64,000 nucleotides of DNA from Chlorokybus atmophyticus (Eukaryota > Plantae > Mesostigma and Chlorokybus algae), in NCBI GenBank assembly GCA_009103225.1, contig RHPI01002823.1:567104-631103 (forward strand), written 5' to 3'. Below the pieces are notes generated by a model that worked only from the letters and a program-made list of their open reading frames with translations, did not search any database and was not told the origin of the DNA. Position numbers and translations under genes: made by a program. Positions 1,219 through 10,667 of this stretch are shown here, one piece after another. Each line of letters starts with the position of its first letter. Positions within the stretch are counted from its first letter, which is position 1.

Positions 1219-3338
1219 TTAATGCGGCCCCTCAACTTCAAGGAGCTGCTTCATCAACTCATACGTCATGAATGCAATGCCAACCCCAGGCACCACTTTG
1301 GAGTATTCTGGTAGTATGCCCCTGTCCAACAGCAACAGCCACAAGTCAGTTTGTGGTGATGCATGAATGGTGATCTGTGTTTCCCCAATTGATGCTGATC
1401 GCCCTTACCTGTACAACCCCTTCAACCCTTCTGTCTTCAGTATGTACGCCAGCGTATGCAGCGCACCCCCTTGGTATACACGAGACCGACCAGCCTGTCC
1501 CTCCAGCTGCATCCTTCTCCTCACCAAGTCAATGGGAAATGTAACTGCATGCATTGACGTGTGTTAGCCCAACACGGACACCAAAGGATAGAGCGCATAC
1601 GTTGAGGCAACCATGCTGTCCACATGCATGTATCATCGATTGCTAAAGGCTGGCCGAAGGTAAGGCCAACTCAACATACCTGATGAGGATGTGATCCCTG
1701 CCAAACTTCCACACGTCAGGCTGACGGCGACTGTAGGTGCTTCAGGTCTGCACACAACATTCACGTGAGCCCCTGTGGTTTGGGCCAATCGTTGACAACC
1801 AACAAACTATCTGTGTGACGACGTACTTATGAGTCAGCCAGTATGCCTTGGTGCTCTCATATACGCAGAAGTTTATTGCCAGATTTGGTCCAACACCCTG
1901 CATGCAGAACACGGTGATGTCTCACATTGCAAGCATGAAATTGCAATCAACAAGCACACTAGTGAAAACAGGACGGCTGGCTTACCATAAGCGTAGGCCC
2001 TAGCCCTTTATAGAGGCCCTTCAGACCCTCATCAGCAGCAATTGTACGCAACGCATGCCATATCCCCTTGTAATACTTCTCTGTGGTCTGCAGCACAGCA
2101 ATGCTTTATATGTGTAATGTAGAATAATGAGATACTGAAATCAGAGTCCAGATACAGATGCATGCACCTGCATAGCACCACAAGGCCAAGGTCTGGGACA
2201 TACAACCAACCTGAGCAGCAAGGCGTGTTCTAACCAAGTCCAATGGGTATGCCATGGTGGCCGCAGTAATGCCCGCACCACCACCTGCTAGCAAGCGGTG
2301 TATAGGCTCTGGCTTGTCCTTGTTAAACCCTTGGCATATCCACTGCAAACAGTAGGCTACAGGCTCAGATCTTGACAATATGAACTTCACTCCGTCATGA
2401 CTTCACTCTTGTACATCAGAACATTTGCAAGAGAGGAGGCCATGCTAGCAAAGAGGGTACACGTGTTAGGCGCCTTTGCTAGCATGGCCTTTGCAGGGTC
2501 ACAGAAGGCGACCATGCGTGCACCCGTGCACATACACAATGCAACTTGCACACGACGACGCTGGCATGGTGGCGTACCCGCTTGTAGCGCTCATACGAAA
2601 AAAAATTGATGGCCGAATAAGGCAATCGATGAATGATGGTAACACCGTTTCCCTTCCACAACGCCCCCACACCCTCCTCTCTCAAAATGCGCAACACCTC
2701 TGCTGTTACGCCCCTTTGCAATGCAGCGTTCTGTACCCCGTGCATGCCCTGTATCTGTAACACACATGCAGTCAGTAGCTTGCATCGCATAAACAAAACT
2801 CTCAAGGCTGCCGCTTGCTGTGCAGAGCCACGCAACTACAAAACCTAGCTGCATGTTGGTACTATCAACTTGCAAGCGGACAAAATCTCACAAGCACAGA
2901 TGCCTGGCGACATGTGTGCAGATTGTGTTTGTAGCGAGCACATTGCTATAGACATGCCGATTGACATGGATCCACACATGCACAACACTACCTTGCCTGG
3001 CCACTGGCTCATGGCGCGGAGACATCAATTGCTGAACTTATGTACATGCTGCAAACACAAATGTCTAGCACAGAGGTTCATGCCGCAAGAAGGTCATGAT
3101 ATGCTACTACTATAACGGCGTCAAATACCTGGAATAGGATGGTGAGGCGCGCGAGTGGGGCGGTGCATGTCTTTGACACTGCGCCAGCAATCCCACCAGA
3201 CAACAGCAGCCTTGCTGTGTTGAATGGGCCAAAACGCAACCCCTTGATAGCCTCCCCATCTAAGTTAGGCGCCCGCGCAGCGTCTTCTGATCGTGGTGAA
3301 GTGGCTGCAATATCCACGGTGACTGCTTGGTGATGCAT
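1219..3338 (-). CDS. Mitochondrial carrier (SLC25), adenine nucleotide/ADNT-like subfamily; about 8 exons
   Basis: Spliced exons read GGIAGAVSKTCTAPLARLTILFQ | IQGMHG...LWKGNGVTIIHRLPYSAINFFSYERYK | [27 protein letters not shown] | TTEKYYKGIWHALRTI...GLYKGLGPTLM | GVGPNLAINFCVYE | CGSLAGITSSS | VTFPIDLVRRRMQLEG | GILPEYSKVVPGVGIAFMTYELMKQLL. Three PxD/ExxK/R-type carrier repeats; TAA at 1219-1221. The ATG at 3338 is the best guess for the start. Confidence 0.92.
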
Positions 3339-3684
3339 GCGGCGACACAACCAAAAATAACCCTCGCCAAAACCTGCACACATGAAGCATTGGTGTGATC
3401 GGCATGGATCAAATAGACATGTGTATTACTATAGCACAGGAGTGCACACGTGTGCTGCTGTTTACCACTGTAATTGTATAGCACTTGCGTGAACAGCTAC
3501 CATGCTAAATCATCAACTATCTCCATAGAGCCAGGTGAGGGACGGTGGTGCCGAACGAAGCGCAAAAAGTCGAGAACGAGAAACAACTCCCAGATCCCTT
3601 TTTTTCTGTATGTTTTTCTGTACTTGGCTTGTGGCAGATGTTACATAACAAGAGACAAACCTCAATTGCTTGTGAGTGATTATG

Positions 3685-4164
3685 TCAGTCATATCCACCA
3701 GTAGCATCAATCTGCTTAATATGACGTTTTGCTGCTGCCTCCGGGTAAAGCTTGGCAAAGCGCCTACACCAAAAACTACAAGTGTTGTTGCTGTGCAGTG
3801 CGAGAATAAAAGCACAGCAACGGTGTGAGGACCCTCAACTGGTGCAATTTCAGTCCACACCTGCTTATCCTCGACCATGCCTATGAGGACGCTGCTACCT
3901 ACCTTTGCCGGAACACAAAAATACGTCTCCCGTAAAATAGTCTGCAAGTTGCAGCCAAGCACATCTCGACGTGGTTAATCTGGTTGGTAGCCACATAAAC
4001 AAGTTTGTGACAGAGTTTCGACTACCAACATAACGGCCAAGCAAGAGTTGTACGCAGCTACTGATGGCTGATTAGCTCATCAGGCCCCCGCTATAGCTGA
4101 TGTTTACAAAATAAAATGTGAGCTACTGTGGAGTGACAGCAACAATGTTGCGAGAAAGCAACAT
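3685..4164 (-). CDS. Possible 51-aa three-exon microprotein (hypothetical)
   Basis: Exons 4164-4127, 3941-3903 and 3763-3685 join with consistent phases to MLLSRNIVAVTPQLFYGRRIFVFRQRRFAKLYPEAAAKRHIKQIDATGGYD*. TGTAA lies about 40 nt downstream. No family recognised, and the first donor (GTAGCT) is weak. Confidence 0.33.
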
Positions 4165-4727
4165 GCTATCAACGCGACATTGCTGGGTATAGCGCGATAG
4201 CCGCAATTGGTCTAGCAAACATCCCCTGCCGCGTACCGTTGTTTGCAGCGACGGGCAAGTGTTTTCACTGCCTCCTCTGGTTTTCGCTACACCGCAGCTG
4301 CCAACCCATACCAGAACACAGGTCCAAACACTAGTACGTCCGCCTTCCAACCAAACCCTAGCAGCCACCCGCCCAACTGGCCAAGAAAACAAGGCTGCAA
4401 GTCAAGGGAGGGATGCTGCCTGTTCGCTTCTGGCTCACAACGTTACAAACGAGGAAAAAGTAGCGCCACGCCGCTACCACCCAACGCCACAACGTGTCCT
4501 CGTTATTCCGCCTCCTACGCAACCAGCCCTTCCACCAAGTCCTCTGCCCCGCCGCCGCCGCCGCCCGAAGATGCTTTGCCGTATCTCAGCTTCACGTTTT
4601 TTGTCCAGGTGGCATAACGTCGATACGATCGATACTCTCAGCATTAAGCAACGCGTCACGCTGTATTCTTTACGTTACAAGCGGCGGCGGTGTTGGCGGC
4701 GGTCGCAAGCAGGAGGTGTACCAGCCC

Positions 4728-5514
4728 ATGAGCTACCCTCGTAGCACGCTCCGGAGCGTCCTGAGCCAACACCTTCCAGACGGTGTGAAAGTCGCCAAAG
4801 ACGCCGATCACTTGGTGAGAGAACATCGACAACCAGCAGCACAACACATTGCAAAGCAGCCAGCCTTCTGCGTCATAAGCACGTGAAGCTAGTAAAGCTG
4901 TCAACTCACTCTTTGCATTGATCCGCAATCATGTTTGCAAGCAAATCACGACGGTTGCAACGACCATGCCACCACTAGTGTTGAGCCCTCCGCTTACCGG
5001 ACCAGACAGTTGGAGCAGTGTTCGTGCACTAAGGGCATACGCTTACAGGGTTGCAGTTTATTTGATTCATAATCCATAGATAGCTGTAGTTGGTGTACTT
5101 GTTAGCAAGTTGAGCCTGGCAATTGCACGCATGGCTCTCAAGTCACTTCACCGCAAATGACTCAACTGCACTCAAGTTCTTATTGCTTGGTTGGCTACCT
5201 AACAGGTGTATTTGGACTGTTGCCTGTTCATGAAGGAGCTGAGCAAAGAGGCACAGAAGCTCGCTCAGAGGGACTCAGCCAGGACTGTTGCAGCCGAACA
5301 CGTCCAGCAAGCTCTGCCTGTGCGCACTCTATGTCATGCAAGTCTTACCCATTGCTGCTATGCGCACTAGGTAGTCGGTTGAAACTCATGCTGCTCTTGT
5401 GCATGAGACTGCAGCTTTGACCCACACATACTGCCACCAAATTAAGCCTATTGGCTGTTGTGTGCCTACCTTGTGGTTGTTGTGCAGGTGGTGCTGAAGC
5501 GCTTTGAAGCGTGA
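4728..5514 (+). CDS. CENPW: Centromere protein W (histone-fold CCAN subunit, Wip1-like), 75 aa, 3 exons
   Basis: Exons 4728-4814, 5206-5319 and 5488-5514, with canonical GT-AG introns, give MSYPRSTLRSVLSQHLPDGVKVAKDADHLVYLDCCLFMKELSKEAQKLAQRDSARTVAAEHVQQALPVVLKRFEA*. This matches the CENP-W pattern (Y/A-PRxxlkr...D-L-v-L-x-xx-LF...L-xxEa...eHV...vvLK). Confidence 0.8.
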
Positions 5515-5533
5515 CTGCAAGCTCTCGCACTGG

Positions 5534-6201
5534 ATGTCAGGTCATGTGCTGCTTGCCATGGCCGTCGGCCTGTTATTAATCGCAACAATTAGTGGCCAAG
5601 CGGTTGAGCCAGCGTCTGTAGCGCGGCCTCGCTTGACACGCCAGCTGGCCAGAATCTGGCAGCGTAGCTCAGCTCAGCACAGCATGGTCGCATCTGATCA
5701 GGTACGTTGCAATGATTGTGACAGGAAACCAGTCGTTGACAGCCGTTGTGTCTCATCTCCGCTGTTGGCAGGCGTCGGATCAGAATGCAACGAGCATCTT
5801 TGTGTATGGTACGCTGAAGAGTGGACAGCCTCGTCACGCAGCATTGCATGGTCAACGCTTCGTTGGACCAGCCAGGACGCAGCCGATGTACAGAATGGTA
5901 AACTGCGGCAGCTATCCGGCTCTTGTACAGGTAAGCCTCCAATTCAGGTTGTGTTGGTAATGATGTTGGAACAACACCAATAACCTTGTGATAGGTGGCG
6001 GCAGACTTGCAGGGTGTCTCAGTGGAGGGCGAGGTTTGGTCGGTTGATCAGGCATGTTTGGCCCGGCTTGACAATATCGAGGGCGAAGGCTTTTTGTACA
6101 AACGAGCGAGTGTCAAGTTGTTGGGTTGTGAAGATAGCGTGCAAACCTACCTGTACCTCCGCAGCATTGAGGGGCTGCCCGACTGCGGTTCGCGGTGGTG
6201 A
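5534..6201 (+). CDS. Gamma-glutamylcyclotransferase / AIG2-like (GGACT/YtfP family) with predicted N-terminal signal peptide; 3 exons
   Basis: Exons about 5534-5701, 5772-5930 and 5995-6201. Motifs IFVYGTLKSG, GSYPALV, VEGEVW, LDNIEG and LYKR. The in-frame leader MSGHVLLAMAVGLLLIATISGQA is hydrophobic. Alternative starts are at 5558 or 5684. Confidence 0.88.
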
Positions 6202-7903
6202 GGCAGCCGTTGTGTATATAGTGTCTCAGTCTGGTACATTTGTCGTTGTCTAGCCCACATCTATAAAGCTTGTTGCGCTGGATATCTGCGCCATGCCAAG
6301 TTGGGGCGTTGTCTGCCTTGATTGAGATAACCTACTAACTTGCCATTACACCAGTGCGTGCTGCGAATGCACATGTGAGAGGACATGCATCGAGCACAAC
6401 ACGACAAGTGTGTTGAGTTATTTGTTTGCCAGGTGTTTGCCGGGGTGACACAGGCCGCCAATCAGCCTGCGTTGTGCAGCCACCCACTAACCATGTACAT
6501 GTTCCTATGTAGTAGTGTATATTATCAGGAAAATGCATCTGGTACTACAATGCGCCCAACCAAGTCCATGGCCACAACATCTGGCATCTGAGGACAACAC
6601 ATGCCACATGGTCACAAGCTAGATCAGACTGTCATGAGCCAACGCAGTTACATCAATGCTAAAACTGGTGCAGCCCTTGGTTGGCATGCTGCCGGGTGAT
6701 GTATCTCTGGCTGGTACCGCAGTGATCTGGAGTAGAACGTAAGGTCCAGCAGAGCAAGCTGACGCAGCAAAGCACGTCACAGCACACAGATCAGCAGCCA
6801 CTCACACACGCCTGCCTCTTGCCACAATTGCACAGCACAAATGGCATTCTGACGACATCAATTCAAAGGCTCCGGGAGTAATCGTGGTCGTGTTGCCCTG
6901 CCTGCCTTGCTTGCCCTACCAGTGTACAAAAGATGCCAGAGGCAATTTGTACATGTCACGCTACGTTCACATGCATTGTGTGTGCACGTGTGCGCGCGTG
7001 CGTGCATGTCTAGGTGGTGATTGTTATTGAGGTTATCGAGGTGTTATTATTAAAGGTGTGTACAAATACCGGAAAATTGAATACATATATTTGTGTGCAT
7101 CACAAATCAATTGATGTGCATCAATAGAGCTAGACTGTGAAATGCATGAGTAATATAAATATACATGTGCACAACATGTGTCACGCAGCATGGTTTTGCG
7201 AGAACGCACCCGTTGCATAGCAGTTGTGCGTGTTGTGTTATTTTATCGCGGTGATTGCGACATGCATGACGAGTTAAGATGTGAACATGCACACGATACC
7301 ATTGACAGAGTTTATTTCATGAACACATAAGATGTAATATGCTTATGAAGCTAACATCATTGAAAAGCTAAGCGAGTGCTAGCGTCCACATCATGTAGCT
7401 GTTTACAATTCAATGTCGCTTTATAAATGTTCACATGCATGACTTAACAACAATACGTCCTTACCAAGCCTTGCCAATGAGGCATTGACTAGGCCAGCAC
7501 ATTGCATGACAATGACGCAGGCCTACATCATCGAGTCAGGGCACGCTTAGCAAGCGTCGCTTACGGTAATTCTGCGTGACGCAGTTATCAAATGCCACCT
7601 GGACCGTCACACTCAGCAGCCTTTGCGCGGGAAACAGCGTCGCGCACTGCTGTCCCGGCGTTTCCGCCGCACCCGGGCGACATCCGGCGATCGCAACGGA
7701 CGCAATGCTGGATGTGCTTGTCATGCCCGCCGTCGCCGTCGCCGTCGTCGTCGCTCAGGCCGGCCATGCGCATGAGGAGGTTGAGGTCGAGGACGAGCAT
7801 GGGGTTGCGCAGTGGATGCAGGGTGGCGATAGTGAAAGCGGGCAGCATTTGCAGCAGTAGCTAGCTGCTGCTGAGGTAGTTAGCTTCCTGCACTGGTGTG
7901 GCC

Positions 7904-10667
7904 ATGGGCAACAGCAGGGGGCGGCGGCTGCTGCGCTCAGCCGCCGCCGCCGCCTGCTTGTGCGTGCTAGGGTACTTCGGGTTCTTGCCGTCCGGGGGAT
8001 ACACCAGGCAGAGCAGGGGTCTCACCGGCGGGACGCTCGCGGAGGTAGCTTTTCCCCAAGGCGGATTGAGGGTTTTGCTGCAGGCGGAGGAGCTTGCCCC
8101 TTTTCCTGCAAACAGTACTATAGTAAGTTTTGCTTGTTGTACCCAACCTGGACAAACAAGAGTGCACACATTGCCTGCATTGAAATCGCAGCAGAAGTTG
8201 GTTTAAGCTGTTACAGGTGGAGTAGCACATACGGTCCATGCCCTTGCACTGTTTAGGTCATGATTCTATGCCAGCTGTTCCTCACCATTAAGTGCTGTCT
8301 GATCAACGGGAGGCGCAATCTGCGATGCTATGTGCACTCTATTACCTTTGTGGCTTCGTACGCAGCGTTTGCTGCTGTCATATCATTGATTAATTATGCA
8401 CCCCATGCATGTGGCTGTGGCATTGCATGTTATGGTTTCACTTGCACTAGTAAATAATATCGCACCCTCGCAGAGTGCCCTGCCTGTTGGACAGGTGCAG
8501 CATGAGTGCACAAGTTGCTGCTTGGTTAGTAATAGTGATGTCAGCTGTCACACTCAACACCAGAATGCCAGCTGATACGCAGAGTATCGCACGTGGATGG
8601 CTTGGTTCTGTTAAGGTGCCCATGTTTGCAATGCAGTAACACCGAGGCCAAGCAGGGTTGCGTTGCTGTGCGATAGCTAGTGTATTGCTTTAGCACGCTG
8701 CGGTGCCTGTTGCGGCATTGTTGTAGTCGCAGTTTGCAACACATCGCCTATGCTCATCTTCCATGTGCTGCTGTAACCAATGCAGCTTGCATGTTTGGCC
8801 TTGGCCATGTGTTGACACCAATTGCCTGGCAGCAGGAGTCTACTGGTGCATGCGATGATCTCAAGCATTGGGAGCGCAGCGGTGGCGTAGCGGTCTACAT
8901 AGCGGGGCTGTTGTATCTGTTGCTTGGGGTTGGCATTGTTTGCGAGGAGTATTTCGCGGTGTCATTAGAGCTCCTGGTGAAGAAGCTGAACCTGCCTGAA
9001 GATGTTGCAGGTAACAACACCACAGCACAACGCCAAGTCATGTTACTGTGCTTGCCCGCAATTGCCTATGCATATCCATGTCAAGGATGTTAGTCAGTGT
9101 GTCACACATTATGTGTCTCAATGCCTGGATTTGTGCTGTTTCAGTCGTTTAACGGAGTACTGTGATGTTGCTTGCAGGAGCAACATTCATGGCTGCGGGC
9201 ACATCCGCGCCCGAGTTGTTTGCAAGCTTAATGGCTTTGCTCAACCCGAGCGCAGACAGCGATGTGGGTATTGCCACTATCGTTGGTTCTGCGGTGTACA
9301 ACATACTTGTGATTGTGGCGCTCTGCGTGCTGGTGCCTAGGAAGAGCATACAAGTTGAACCTCGCTCGCTGTCGAGAGACTGTTTCTTCTACGGCCTCGC
9401 AATTGTCAGCATCATATGGATCTTCTACGATGGCGTCGTGCATTGGTGGGAGGGACTGATATGTGTCATGGCATACATGTGTTATGGCTGCTACATGGCC
9501 GTGGACAAGCGGTTTTCCTCGTGGTTGTATTACAAGTTCTGGGGCGCACCCAAGCCTGTATCAGTACCCGTTGATAGTGTTGATGGCTTCTCTGCTGCTG
9601 GCACCTCTGCACCGGTTGGCCAGAAGAAGGGTTACAGTGAGTTTCGTGATGAAGATGATGGCAGAGATGATTCCCTGATGATCAAGGAGCCACCTGGCAG
9701 CAATTACGAGCTCCCATCTACAGCATCGAAGCACATCGAGCTGTCATCACTCAACATGTCTATGGCAGAGTGGCCATTTGTGGGTGCGAAGCCGCTCATA
9801 TTGCCTGCAAGTCGGTTCGCAAGGACGGTCAGGATCGTCGCATACACGCAGCGGTTTTGCAAGAATTGCAGAAAAGGCGTGCTTCTGCGACGGGAGTCTC
9901 TCAAACCTCTCTCATTGCCAATTGCCTCGGCACCGGAGCAGATGACCACGATCGCTCTTGGGGATGAGAGGGTTGACGCCAACGACGATGACAGCGTCCA
10001 TAACCCCGTGCTGCGCAACGTGTACAAAATCGGTAACGAGTTGGACGGCCTTTTGCCTCACGACCCATTTCATGTAGAGAACCCTTTTGCAGTTCCCAAT
10101 CGGCGCATTGATAAGGTGTTTTGGCTGCTGGCGCTGCCTTGGCAAGCAGCGTACTTCATAACAATACCCAACTGCAAGAGGCAGAGGTGGAGGCCGTACT
10201 TCCTCCTCACATTCATCATGGCGATCGTGTGGATGGGCTTGATATGTTGGCTGCTTGTTGAGTGGGCAACTCGTGTCGGCTGTATCCTTAACATCCCCAG
10301 TGCGTTCATGGGCGTGACCATCCTCGCAGCCGGCACAAGTCTACCGGACACGCTCGCATCAGTGGCTGTTGCCAAAACCATGCCGCAGATGGCGCTGGCG
10401 AATGCGCTTGGCAGCAACATTTTTGACGTGTGGATTGCGTTGGGCGTGCCTTGGCTGTTCGTGCTGCCCTTCAAGGGTCCGATACGCGTCCCGACAAGCG
10501 ACCTGTTGTCCAACTCTCTCATTATGGCGGCTGCGCTCTGCTTGTACTACATCAGCGTGATGTTATCGAAATGGCGGATGAAAGTTGGGATGGGCTTTTT
10601 CTTTCTTTTCTGCTACGTCATGTATGTGGCGTACAATGTGGTTTTCATTTGGATTCTCAGGGATTGA
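7904..10667 (+). CDS. K+-dependent Na+/Ca2+ exchanger-like (NCKX/SLC24, CaCA superfamily); 3 exons
   Basis: Exon 1 is 7904-8122, exon 2 about 8836-9010 (GIVCEEYFAVSLELLVKKLNLPEDVA) and exon 3 about 9178-10667. Alpha-1 repeat GATFMAAGTSAPE, GIATIVGSAVYNIL; alpha-2 repeat MGVTILAAGTSLPD, ALGSNIFD. Confidence 0.92.

Follow-up and report, generated by a model that had tools for sequence, protein, structure and literature searches.

A candidate bicistronic mRNA carrying a small histone-fold reading frame and a bacterial-type cyclotransferase-family gene in the streptophyte alga Chlorokybus atmophyticus

Can one nuclear mRNA of a streptophyte alga carry the reading frames of both a tiny histone-fold protein and an unrelated enzyme? 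The question is raised by a 64,000-nt stretch of Chlorokybus atmophyticus DNA (contig RHPI01002823.1, positions 567,104-631,103, forward strand), which we call the window and number from its first base. A sequence-only reading of it had proposed that a spliced open reading frame (ORF1) for a CENP-W-like kinetochore protein and a closely following one (ORF2) for an enzyme of the gamma-glutamyl cyclotransferase (GGCT) type have one transcript in common, from which both are translated. In that model ORF1 encodes 75 residues in three exons (4728-4814, 5206-5319 and 5488-5514, ending with TGA 5512-5514), ORF2 starts at ATG 5534 and encodes 177 residues (exons 5534-5701, 5772-5930 and 5995-6201), and the introns of both are all GT..AG and phase 0. 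The sequence bears out the 19-nt distance between the TGA and the in-frame ORF2 start, as well as an alternative in-frame ATG at 5684, 169 nt past the TGA. From the RNA assemblies and protein comparisons described here we conclude that, very probably, this is a genuine bicistronic transcription unit.

Four sequencing runs were compared, all as assembled contigs, and the RNA evidence comes from two separate studies, here X1 (2013) and X2 (2021). Three of the runs contain 24-37% of the sampled words from window positions 4500-6700, a level that fits either spliced RNA or low-coverage DNA. One run, X3, behaves as a DNA run, with introns and intergenic DNA at about 3x and no other letters in its listed pieces. 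In X1, a single 964-nt contig joins 96 nt of exon 1 to 5205-5368, 5486-5698, 5769-5928 and 5993-6299 and then ends in 24 A residues (A24), which are absent from the genome and hence non-templated. The same four joints are present in X2, where an 837-nt contig covers 5212 to 6299. The exon in which the earlier ORF1 model ends and ORF2 begins is unbroken in X1 record 2 and X2 record 7 (5486-5698). Depth at the X2 joints is nearly equal, with 1567 at 4813>5205 and 1604.5 for every one of the three joints downstream, so that only about 3% is left for an RNA carrying ORF2 alone. Coverage of intron 2 is close to nil (the X1 bin 5401-5591 has a depth of 17.4, with 17.1 expected from its exon sequence alone), which confines any internal transcription start to the 46 nt before ATG 5534.

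A poly(A) site inside 5515-5680, which the sequence-only reading had named, in combination with an independent start for ORF2, as speaking against a shared mRNA, was looked for among the listed contig ends of X1 and X2; the only A-run end among them is at 6299. Contigs lose rare variants, and this inspection of loose ends covered the listed ends, with six further ends lying outside the listing. The lack of TGTAA in the spacer had been offered as another argument. TGTAA is the chlorophyte poly(A) signal, and it is indeed absent, from the whole + strand between 4000 and 7333 and thus also from upstream of the poly(A) site at 6299. Counts of the pentamer across the window are 63 on the + strand and 69 on the other strand, versus 57 expected. 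As the motif is neither enriched here nor present upstream of the poly(A) site actually used, nothing can be read from its lack in the spacer. At the level of contigs we thus observe the full exon chain, the shared exon 5488-5701, one poly(A) tail past ORF2, and matching depth for the joints of the two frames. The claim of one mRNA for both frames holds for the contig chain that reaches A24 in the two studies, with the reservation that contigs are not single molecules. It is highly likely that a single mRNA carries ORF1 and ORF2, and we lean towards the view that both putative products are made.

The same contigs change the model of ORF1. In both RNA assemblies the donor of intron 2 is 5371 (tag/GTAGTC), 51 nt past 5320, and no 5319>5488 joint is listed in the X1 and X2 contigs, from which rare variants can drop out. 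The upstream ORF of 75 residues exists in the sequence, but because donor 5371 is used, the ORF1 of the observed isoform has 83 residues, the mRNA spacer between its stop and ATG 5534 grows from 19 to 46 nt, and ATGs 5331, 5336 and 5360 are added. The claim that the spliced coding sequence holds just one other ATG (5230, ttcATGa) is accordingly true of the 5320-donor model but not of the isoform seen in RNA. The added segment, 5320-5370, contributes a Cys/His-rich tail (VRTLCHASLTHCCYAH) and a TAG stop (5368-5370) with which exon 2 ends. Residues from helix 2 to helix 3 of the histone fold are encoded by 5206-5319, and this part is unbroken in both isoforms. A scan of the sequence found no ATG between 4574 and 4727. 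The features of the locus are collected in Table 1.

Table 1. Features of the locus in window coordinates. AUG strength follows the general rule of A or G at -3 and G at +4.
Feature	Position	Strand	Details
5' leader	4683..4727	+	5' end uncertain, ~4640-4718; X1 contig begins ~4718; Illumina adapter remnant abuts 4683 in X2 contig
ORF1 exon 1, 29 residues	4728..4814	+	joint 4813>5205, GT..AG, X1 and X2; cccATGa start
ORF1 exon 2 as in RNA	5206..5370	+	joint 5368>5486 (cut +2; intron 5371-5487), X1 and X2
Intron 2 of the earlier model	5320..5487	+	donor cct/GTGCGC; required for the CENP-W-like C-terminus (VVLKRFEA) of the 75-residue model
Shared exon	5488..5701	+	earlier ORF1 end TGA 5512-5514; spacer; ORF2 ATGs 5534/5558/5684; hydrophobic ORF2 N-terminal extension
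ORF2 exon 2	5772..5930	+	GGACT/AIG2-like domain start, YGTLK motif; PF06094 2.5e-09; joints 5698>5769, 5928>5993
ORF2 exon 3	5995..6201	+	rest of GGACT domain, Glu in NIEGEG; PF06094 1e-08; stop TGA 6199-6201
3' untranslated region and poly(A) site	6202..6299	+	TATAAA ~6263-6268, ~32-37 nt upstream; cleavage after 6299; X1 contig end
AUG 4728	4728		cccATGa; weak (C at -3, A at +4)
AUG 5230	5230		ttcATGa; weak; in frame with ORF1
AUG 5534	5534		tggATGt; weak; first AUG of ORF2
AUG 5558	5558		gccATGg; strong; in ORF2 frame
AUG 5684	5684		agcATGg; strong; in ORF2 frame
First (non-coding) exon of mitochondrial-carrier-like gene	4235..4580	-	X1 record 1, X2 record 5; joint 3371>4235, CT..AC

Two further points concern the reading frame of ORF1. 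A minor GC..AG joint in X2, 4878>5206, would shift the frame; with a depth of 4.8 vs about 1567, it is probably splicing noise. A readthrough fusion of ORF1 to ORF2 was considered and rejected, as ATG 5534 lies in another frame than ORF1 and an in-frame TGA intervenes.

What kind of protein does ORF1 encode? Pfam and PDB queries for both ORFs were run exon by exon, and the joined 75-residue model of ORF1 was used for translation and AUG counts only. Exon 2 matches the histone-fold family PF00808 at 5.8e-07 and 30.1 bits (gathering score 21.4), and the match reaches the last profile position (65/65) at residue 37 of the exon. Its length, 75 residues in the earlier model and 83 in the observed isoform, fits a minimal histone-fold protein of about 75-90 residues, and these comparisons firmly support a predicted protein of that kind. 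The more specific name CENP-W is another matter. Like CENP-W, the predicted protein is a minimal histone fold, and exon 2 gives a gapless alignment with positions 44-78 of the 88 of human CENP-W (chains such as 7qoo and 7r5s), with both human CENP-W and the 75-residue model ending 10 residues past the aligned block. Yet exon 2 alone scores only 16.4 bits against the CENP-W family PF15510 (E 0.011; 35 of 88 profile positions, 44-78), below the threshold of 25; NC2-beta-type chains do slightly better in the PDB (E 0.02-0.25) than human CENP-W (E 0.53); and the matching C-terminus needs the donor that was not seen. Exon 2 has no CENP-X match in Pfam even at E up to 10, and exon 1 alone has no match in Pfam or the PDB. 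The neighbours of ORF1 in the ESM Atlas are generic histone folds only (0.81-0.84); CENP-X comes fourth among them and CENP-W eighth. The histone fold in the original assignment is therefore sound, and CENP-W is the best label, if an unproven one, with another small histone-fold protein as the alternative. ORF1 appears to be without public annotation.

For ORF2, the sequence-only reading had named a GGCT-type enzyme, and this assignment agrees with the databases. A HMMER scan with exon 3 recovered a public Chlorokybus atmophyticus protein (P0001; EukProt EP00898, JGI Chlat1 model Chrsp27S04238) that is identical to the spliced 177-residue product and scores 78.1 bits against PF06094 (threshold 22.8). 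The public Chlat1 gene model annotates the frame from ATG 5534 and covers ORF2 only. The Glu of its NIEGEG motif aligns with the residue changed in the E-to-Q mutant (3JUD) of human GGACT (3JUB), and both F66-K72 and E138 are invariant in an alignment (A1) of P0001 with its bacterial homologues. We take the product to be a GGACT/AIG2-like enzyme of the gamma-glutamyl(amine) cyclotransferase family, of bacterial type and with putative activity. Its N-terminal exon, of 56 residues, has no Pfam match and no counterpart in the bacterial homologues; this hydrophobic, lineage-specific N-terminus looks like a signal peptide. A start at 5558 would retain the hydrophobic stretch (VGLLLIATISGQA), whereas one at 5684 would give a 127-residue product of bacterial length that lacks it. 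No second copy of ORF1 or ORF2 was found within the 64-kb window, and an exact look-up returned no genomic-context record for P0001.

The relatives of the enzyme point to its origin. The 119 other listed relatives of P0001 share 45-58% identity with it over residues ~63-177; all that bear names are bacterial and belong to the Planctomycetota or Verrucomicrobiota group (Planctomicrobium, Prosthecobacter, Opitutaceae, Planctomycetes, Phycisphaeraceae), and no further protein of eukaryotic source (EukProt) is found among the best 120. For two of the relatives, the surrounding genes on long metagenomic contigs are closely packed in the manner of prokaryotes. By comparison, human GGACT reaches only 39 bits. 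The alignment with the bacterial relatives extends to the C-terminal DCGxxW and leaves the N-terminal 62 algal residues unmatched; ORF2 exon 1 ends just ahead of the domain. Identity to the GGACT/AIG2-like (YtfP-type) proteins of Planctomycetota and Verrucomicrobiota is 50-58% across the whole domain to its DCGxxW end, with an invariant YGTLK and a shared Glu aligned to the human catalytic residue. The algal gene differs from the bacterial ones in its two spliceosomal introns, its poly(A) tail and the extra N-terminal exon, and in standing as second cistron behind a eukaryotic gene. Contamination as the source of ORF2 was considered and is excluded by the introns, the poly(A) tail and the eukaryotic neighbours. 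The comparison points to ORF2 as a candidate horizontal acquisition from bacteria of the Planctomycetes-Verrucomicrobia-Chlamydiae (PVC) group, followed by domestication. An acquisition of this kind would make the pairing of ORF1 and ORF2 young rather than anciently conserved.

How, then, might ribosomes reach ORF2? Our proposal as a whole, to which we give somewhat better than even chances, is a five-exon polyadenylated nuclear mRNA that would start at about 4640-4718, end with poly(A) at 6299 and carry two non-overlapping ORFs, both translated from the shared molecule. Ribosomes would reach ORF2 mainly by leaky scanning past the weak AUGs at 4728 and 5230 and would then initiate at 5534 and/or at 5558, in its strong context; that leaky scanning is the main route seems to us about an even bet. 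The weak context claimed for the ORF1 ATG (cccATGa at 4728) is confirmed. In this proposal the choice of intron-2 donor would set the tail of ORF1, the length of the spacer (19 or 46 nt) and the presence of three extra AUGs in the scanning path, and may therefore set the ratio of ORF1 to ORF2 output. The frames that start at ATGs 5331, 5336 and 5360 are 6-19 codons long and stop at 5497-5507, and such short ORFs in the observed isoform could leave room for some reinitiation at ORF2.

Several observations weigh against this proposal. A contig spanning two genes is not proof of one molecule, and molecules that share at least 31 bases are inseparable in such assemblies. The CENP-W-like C-terminus depends on donor 5320, and the observed isoform is without it. 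A word search of a 5.8-billion-cluster collection with the 54-residue exon-2 ORF found no relatives of ORF1 among public proteins of 30-94 residues. If the enzyme gene was recently acquired, the pairing cannot be anciently conserved. The context is weak at the first AUG of ORF2 as well, and a cost to ORF2 initiation is expected from the two extra AUGs that have a G at -3. Finally, AUGs upstream of ORF2 are not depleted in the observed isoform, which has 5 against 4.5 expected. The depletion vanishes because of the three ATGs that donor 5371 adds; in the earlier isoform the count is 2 against 3.75 expected, a ratio of 0.53 that is not significant (P ~0.26). Of the original case for leaky scanning, the weak ORF1 AUG thus survives, while the argument from scarce AUGs fits only the isoform that was not observed. 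AUG depletion is a statistical trend across loci and not a strict requirement for a single locus.

In an alternative reading, the mRNA would be functionally monocistronic for GGACT: this abundant RNA would chiefly serve the enzyme, with the histone-fold frame acting as a long upstream ORF that damps translation of the enzyme, either as a decaying or regulatory remnant or as a frame that yields a product in a rare splice isoform alone. In its favour, the sole isoform seen has an odd Cys/His-rich tail, a stop at the exon edge and no CENP-W-like C-terminus. The CENP-W score under the Pfam threshold, the lack of any relative or annotation for ORF1 and a public gene model limited to ORF2 lean the same way, as does an X2 depth about 10x that of neighbouring genes, unusual for a kinetochore protein, with depth being a poor measure. 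We nevertheless consider this explanation unlikely. Exon 2 by itself clears the curated histone-fold threshold, ORF1 covers two or three exons that are all phase 0, its histone-fold part is intact whichever donor is used, and the gapless alignment to human CENP-W is accompanied, in the earlier model, by a matching distance to the C-terminal end.

The limits of contigs also leave some room for two independent overlapping transcripts, one for ORF1 that ends within the GGACT gene and one for GGACT with its start in 5488-5533, merged by the de Bruijn assembler. This we find quite improbable, as the full exon chain is the same in two studies, the X2 joint depths leave so little for a GGACT-only RNA, the empty intron 2 limits an internal start to a 46-nt stretch, and 6299 is the sole poly(A) end among the listed ends. 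A true bicistron could also express ORF2 by termination and reinitiation, after ORF1 itself or after the short ORFs from 5331, 5336 and 5360. The geometry of the latter is favourable, their stops lying 27-37 nt before AUG 5534, and the undepleted AUGs suit such a route. Reinitiation is generally inefficient after an ORF of 75-83 codons, however, in vivo mutagenesis in green algae favours leaky scanning (PMC11892635), and the ORF1 AUG has a weak context; we give it very little chance as the main route. A shared mRNA with two ORFs that are probably both translated stays our preferred reading.

Around the locus, one neighbouring gene is divergent from the ORF1 transcript. It is a mitochondrial-carrier-like gene with ORFs at 2106-3383 on the - strand and an 863-nt intron (3372-4234) in its 5' untranslated region. 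The 5' ends of the two transcripts are only about 60-140 bp apart, and because two divergent ends lie so close the region from 4580 to about 4700 is probably a bidirectional promoter. Downstream, about 1.4 kb of untranscribed DNA, AT-rich at 7000-7500 (GC content 0.39), separates the poly(A) site from the next + strand gene (window 7740-10667), a member of the Na/Ca-exchanger family (PF01699, 2e-45), whose RNA contigs begin at about 7740 and which has an intron at 8123-8832. At 6921-6955, a piece of about 34 nt is common to otherwise unrelated X1 and X2 RNA contigs, with loose ends on both sides; a short repeat or part of a mobile element could account for it. The fourth run, X4, comes from the same 2021 study as X2 and bears the same species label; it shows only 90-99% identity over window 3300-9000, with many substitutions, which suggests a divergent strain or cryptic species that could be used to estimate the ratio of nonsynonymous to synonymous substitution (dN/dS) on ORF1.

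How does the locus compare with known bicistronic systems? Among green algae, chlorophytes are established hosts of nuclear loci that are exclusively polycistronic (Gallaher et al. 2021, PMC7896298; Duenas et al. 2025, PMC11892635). In green algae, mutagenesis in vivo speaks for leaky scanning as the principal way to the second ORF (PMC11892635). The locus studied here resembles those of chlorophytes in having a spliced, polyadenylated RNA with two ORFs in line (here at contig level), a small ORF1 with a weak Kozak-like context, a short spacer and a short ATG-free leader, and in a public gene set that annotates the longer ORF2 and misses ORF1. Its dimensions, 228-252 nt for ORF1, 19-46 nt for the spacer and about 10-90 nt (~45 nt) for the leader, can be set beside the medians of curated algal bicistrons, which are 291-357, 40-183 and 54-83 nt (PMC11892635). 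It differs in its host, a streptophyte alga, in resting on short-read contigs, in the undepleted AUGs of the observed isoform, and in an alternative donor inside ORF1 that shifts both stop and spacer. The main text of PMC7896298 and the searched supplements of PMC11892635 make no mention of a CENP-W, centromere, cyclotransferase or AIG2 member. Among the matches listed for Chlorokybus and polycistronic literature, titles and abstracts concern organelle genomes or unrelated subjects only.

A second comparison is with CDC26_TTM3, a bicistron deeply conserved in land plants and green algae, taken here as it is discussed in PMC11892635 (Lorenzo-Orts et al. 2019). As that discussion describes it, this mRNA too encodes a tiny protein of cell division ahead of a metabolic enzyme to which it is unrelated, with the upstream stop ahead of downstream exon junctions. 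The ORF1 stop likewise lies upstream of two further exon junctions, and for that reason an interplay with nonsense-mediated decay is to be expected, as in CDC26_TTM3. The difference, on the same account, is that the enzyme in our locus resembles a lineage-specific bacterial acquisition, so that its pairing with ORF1 is probably young. The Chlorokybus locus is very probably a new example of a known algal phenomenon, not a new mechanism, in a lineage without an earlier description of one.

Taken together, these features would allow a joint reading, which we put forward as speculative and rather doubtful. A PVC-type GGACT gene would have been acquired, without a promoter of its own, as second cistron of the mRNA of a tiny host kinetochore or histone-fold gene, and would later have gained introns and a secretory N-terminal exon. 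The ORF1 donor would then act as a switch that tunes both proteins: donor 5320 would give an AUG-poor leader and the canonical CENP-W, and donor 5371 an AUG-rich leader and an altered tail.

Chlorokybus is an early-branching streptophyte alga, one of those at the greatest distance from land plants, and a well-supported case in it would help to link the polycistrons of chlorophytes with CDC26_TTM3 of land plants. With the locus comes a small histone-fold gene for which the search of public proteins 30-94 residues long gave no match. The locus also offers two natural tests, one of how splice-site choice in ORF1 affects the scanning path to ORF2, and one of whether the gene of a bacterial-type enzyme can find expression as a passenger on a host mRNA. 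If the joint reading is true, bicistronic capture would be a route by which transferred genes were domesticated at the base of the streptophytes.

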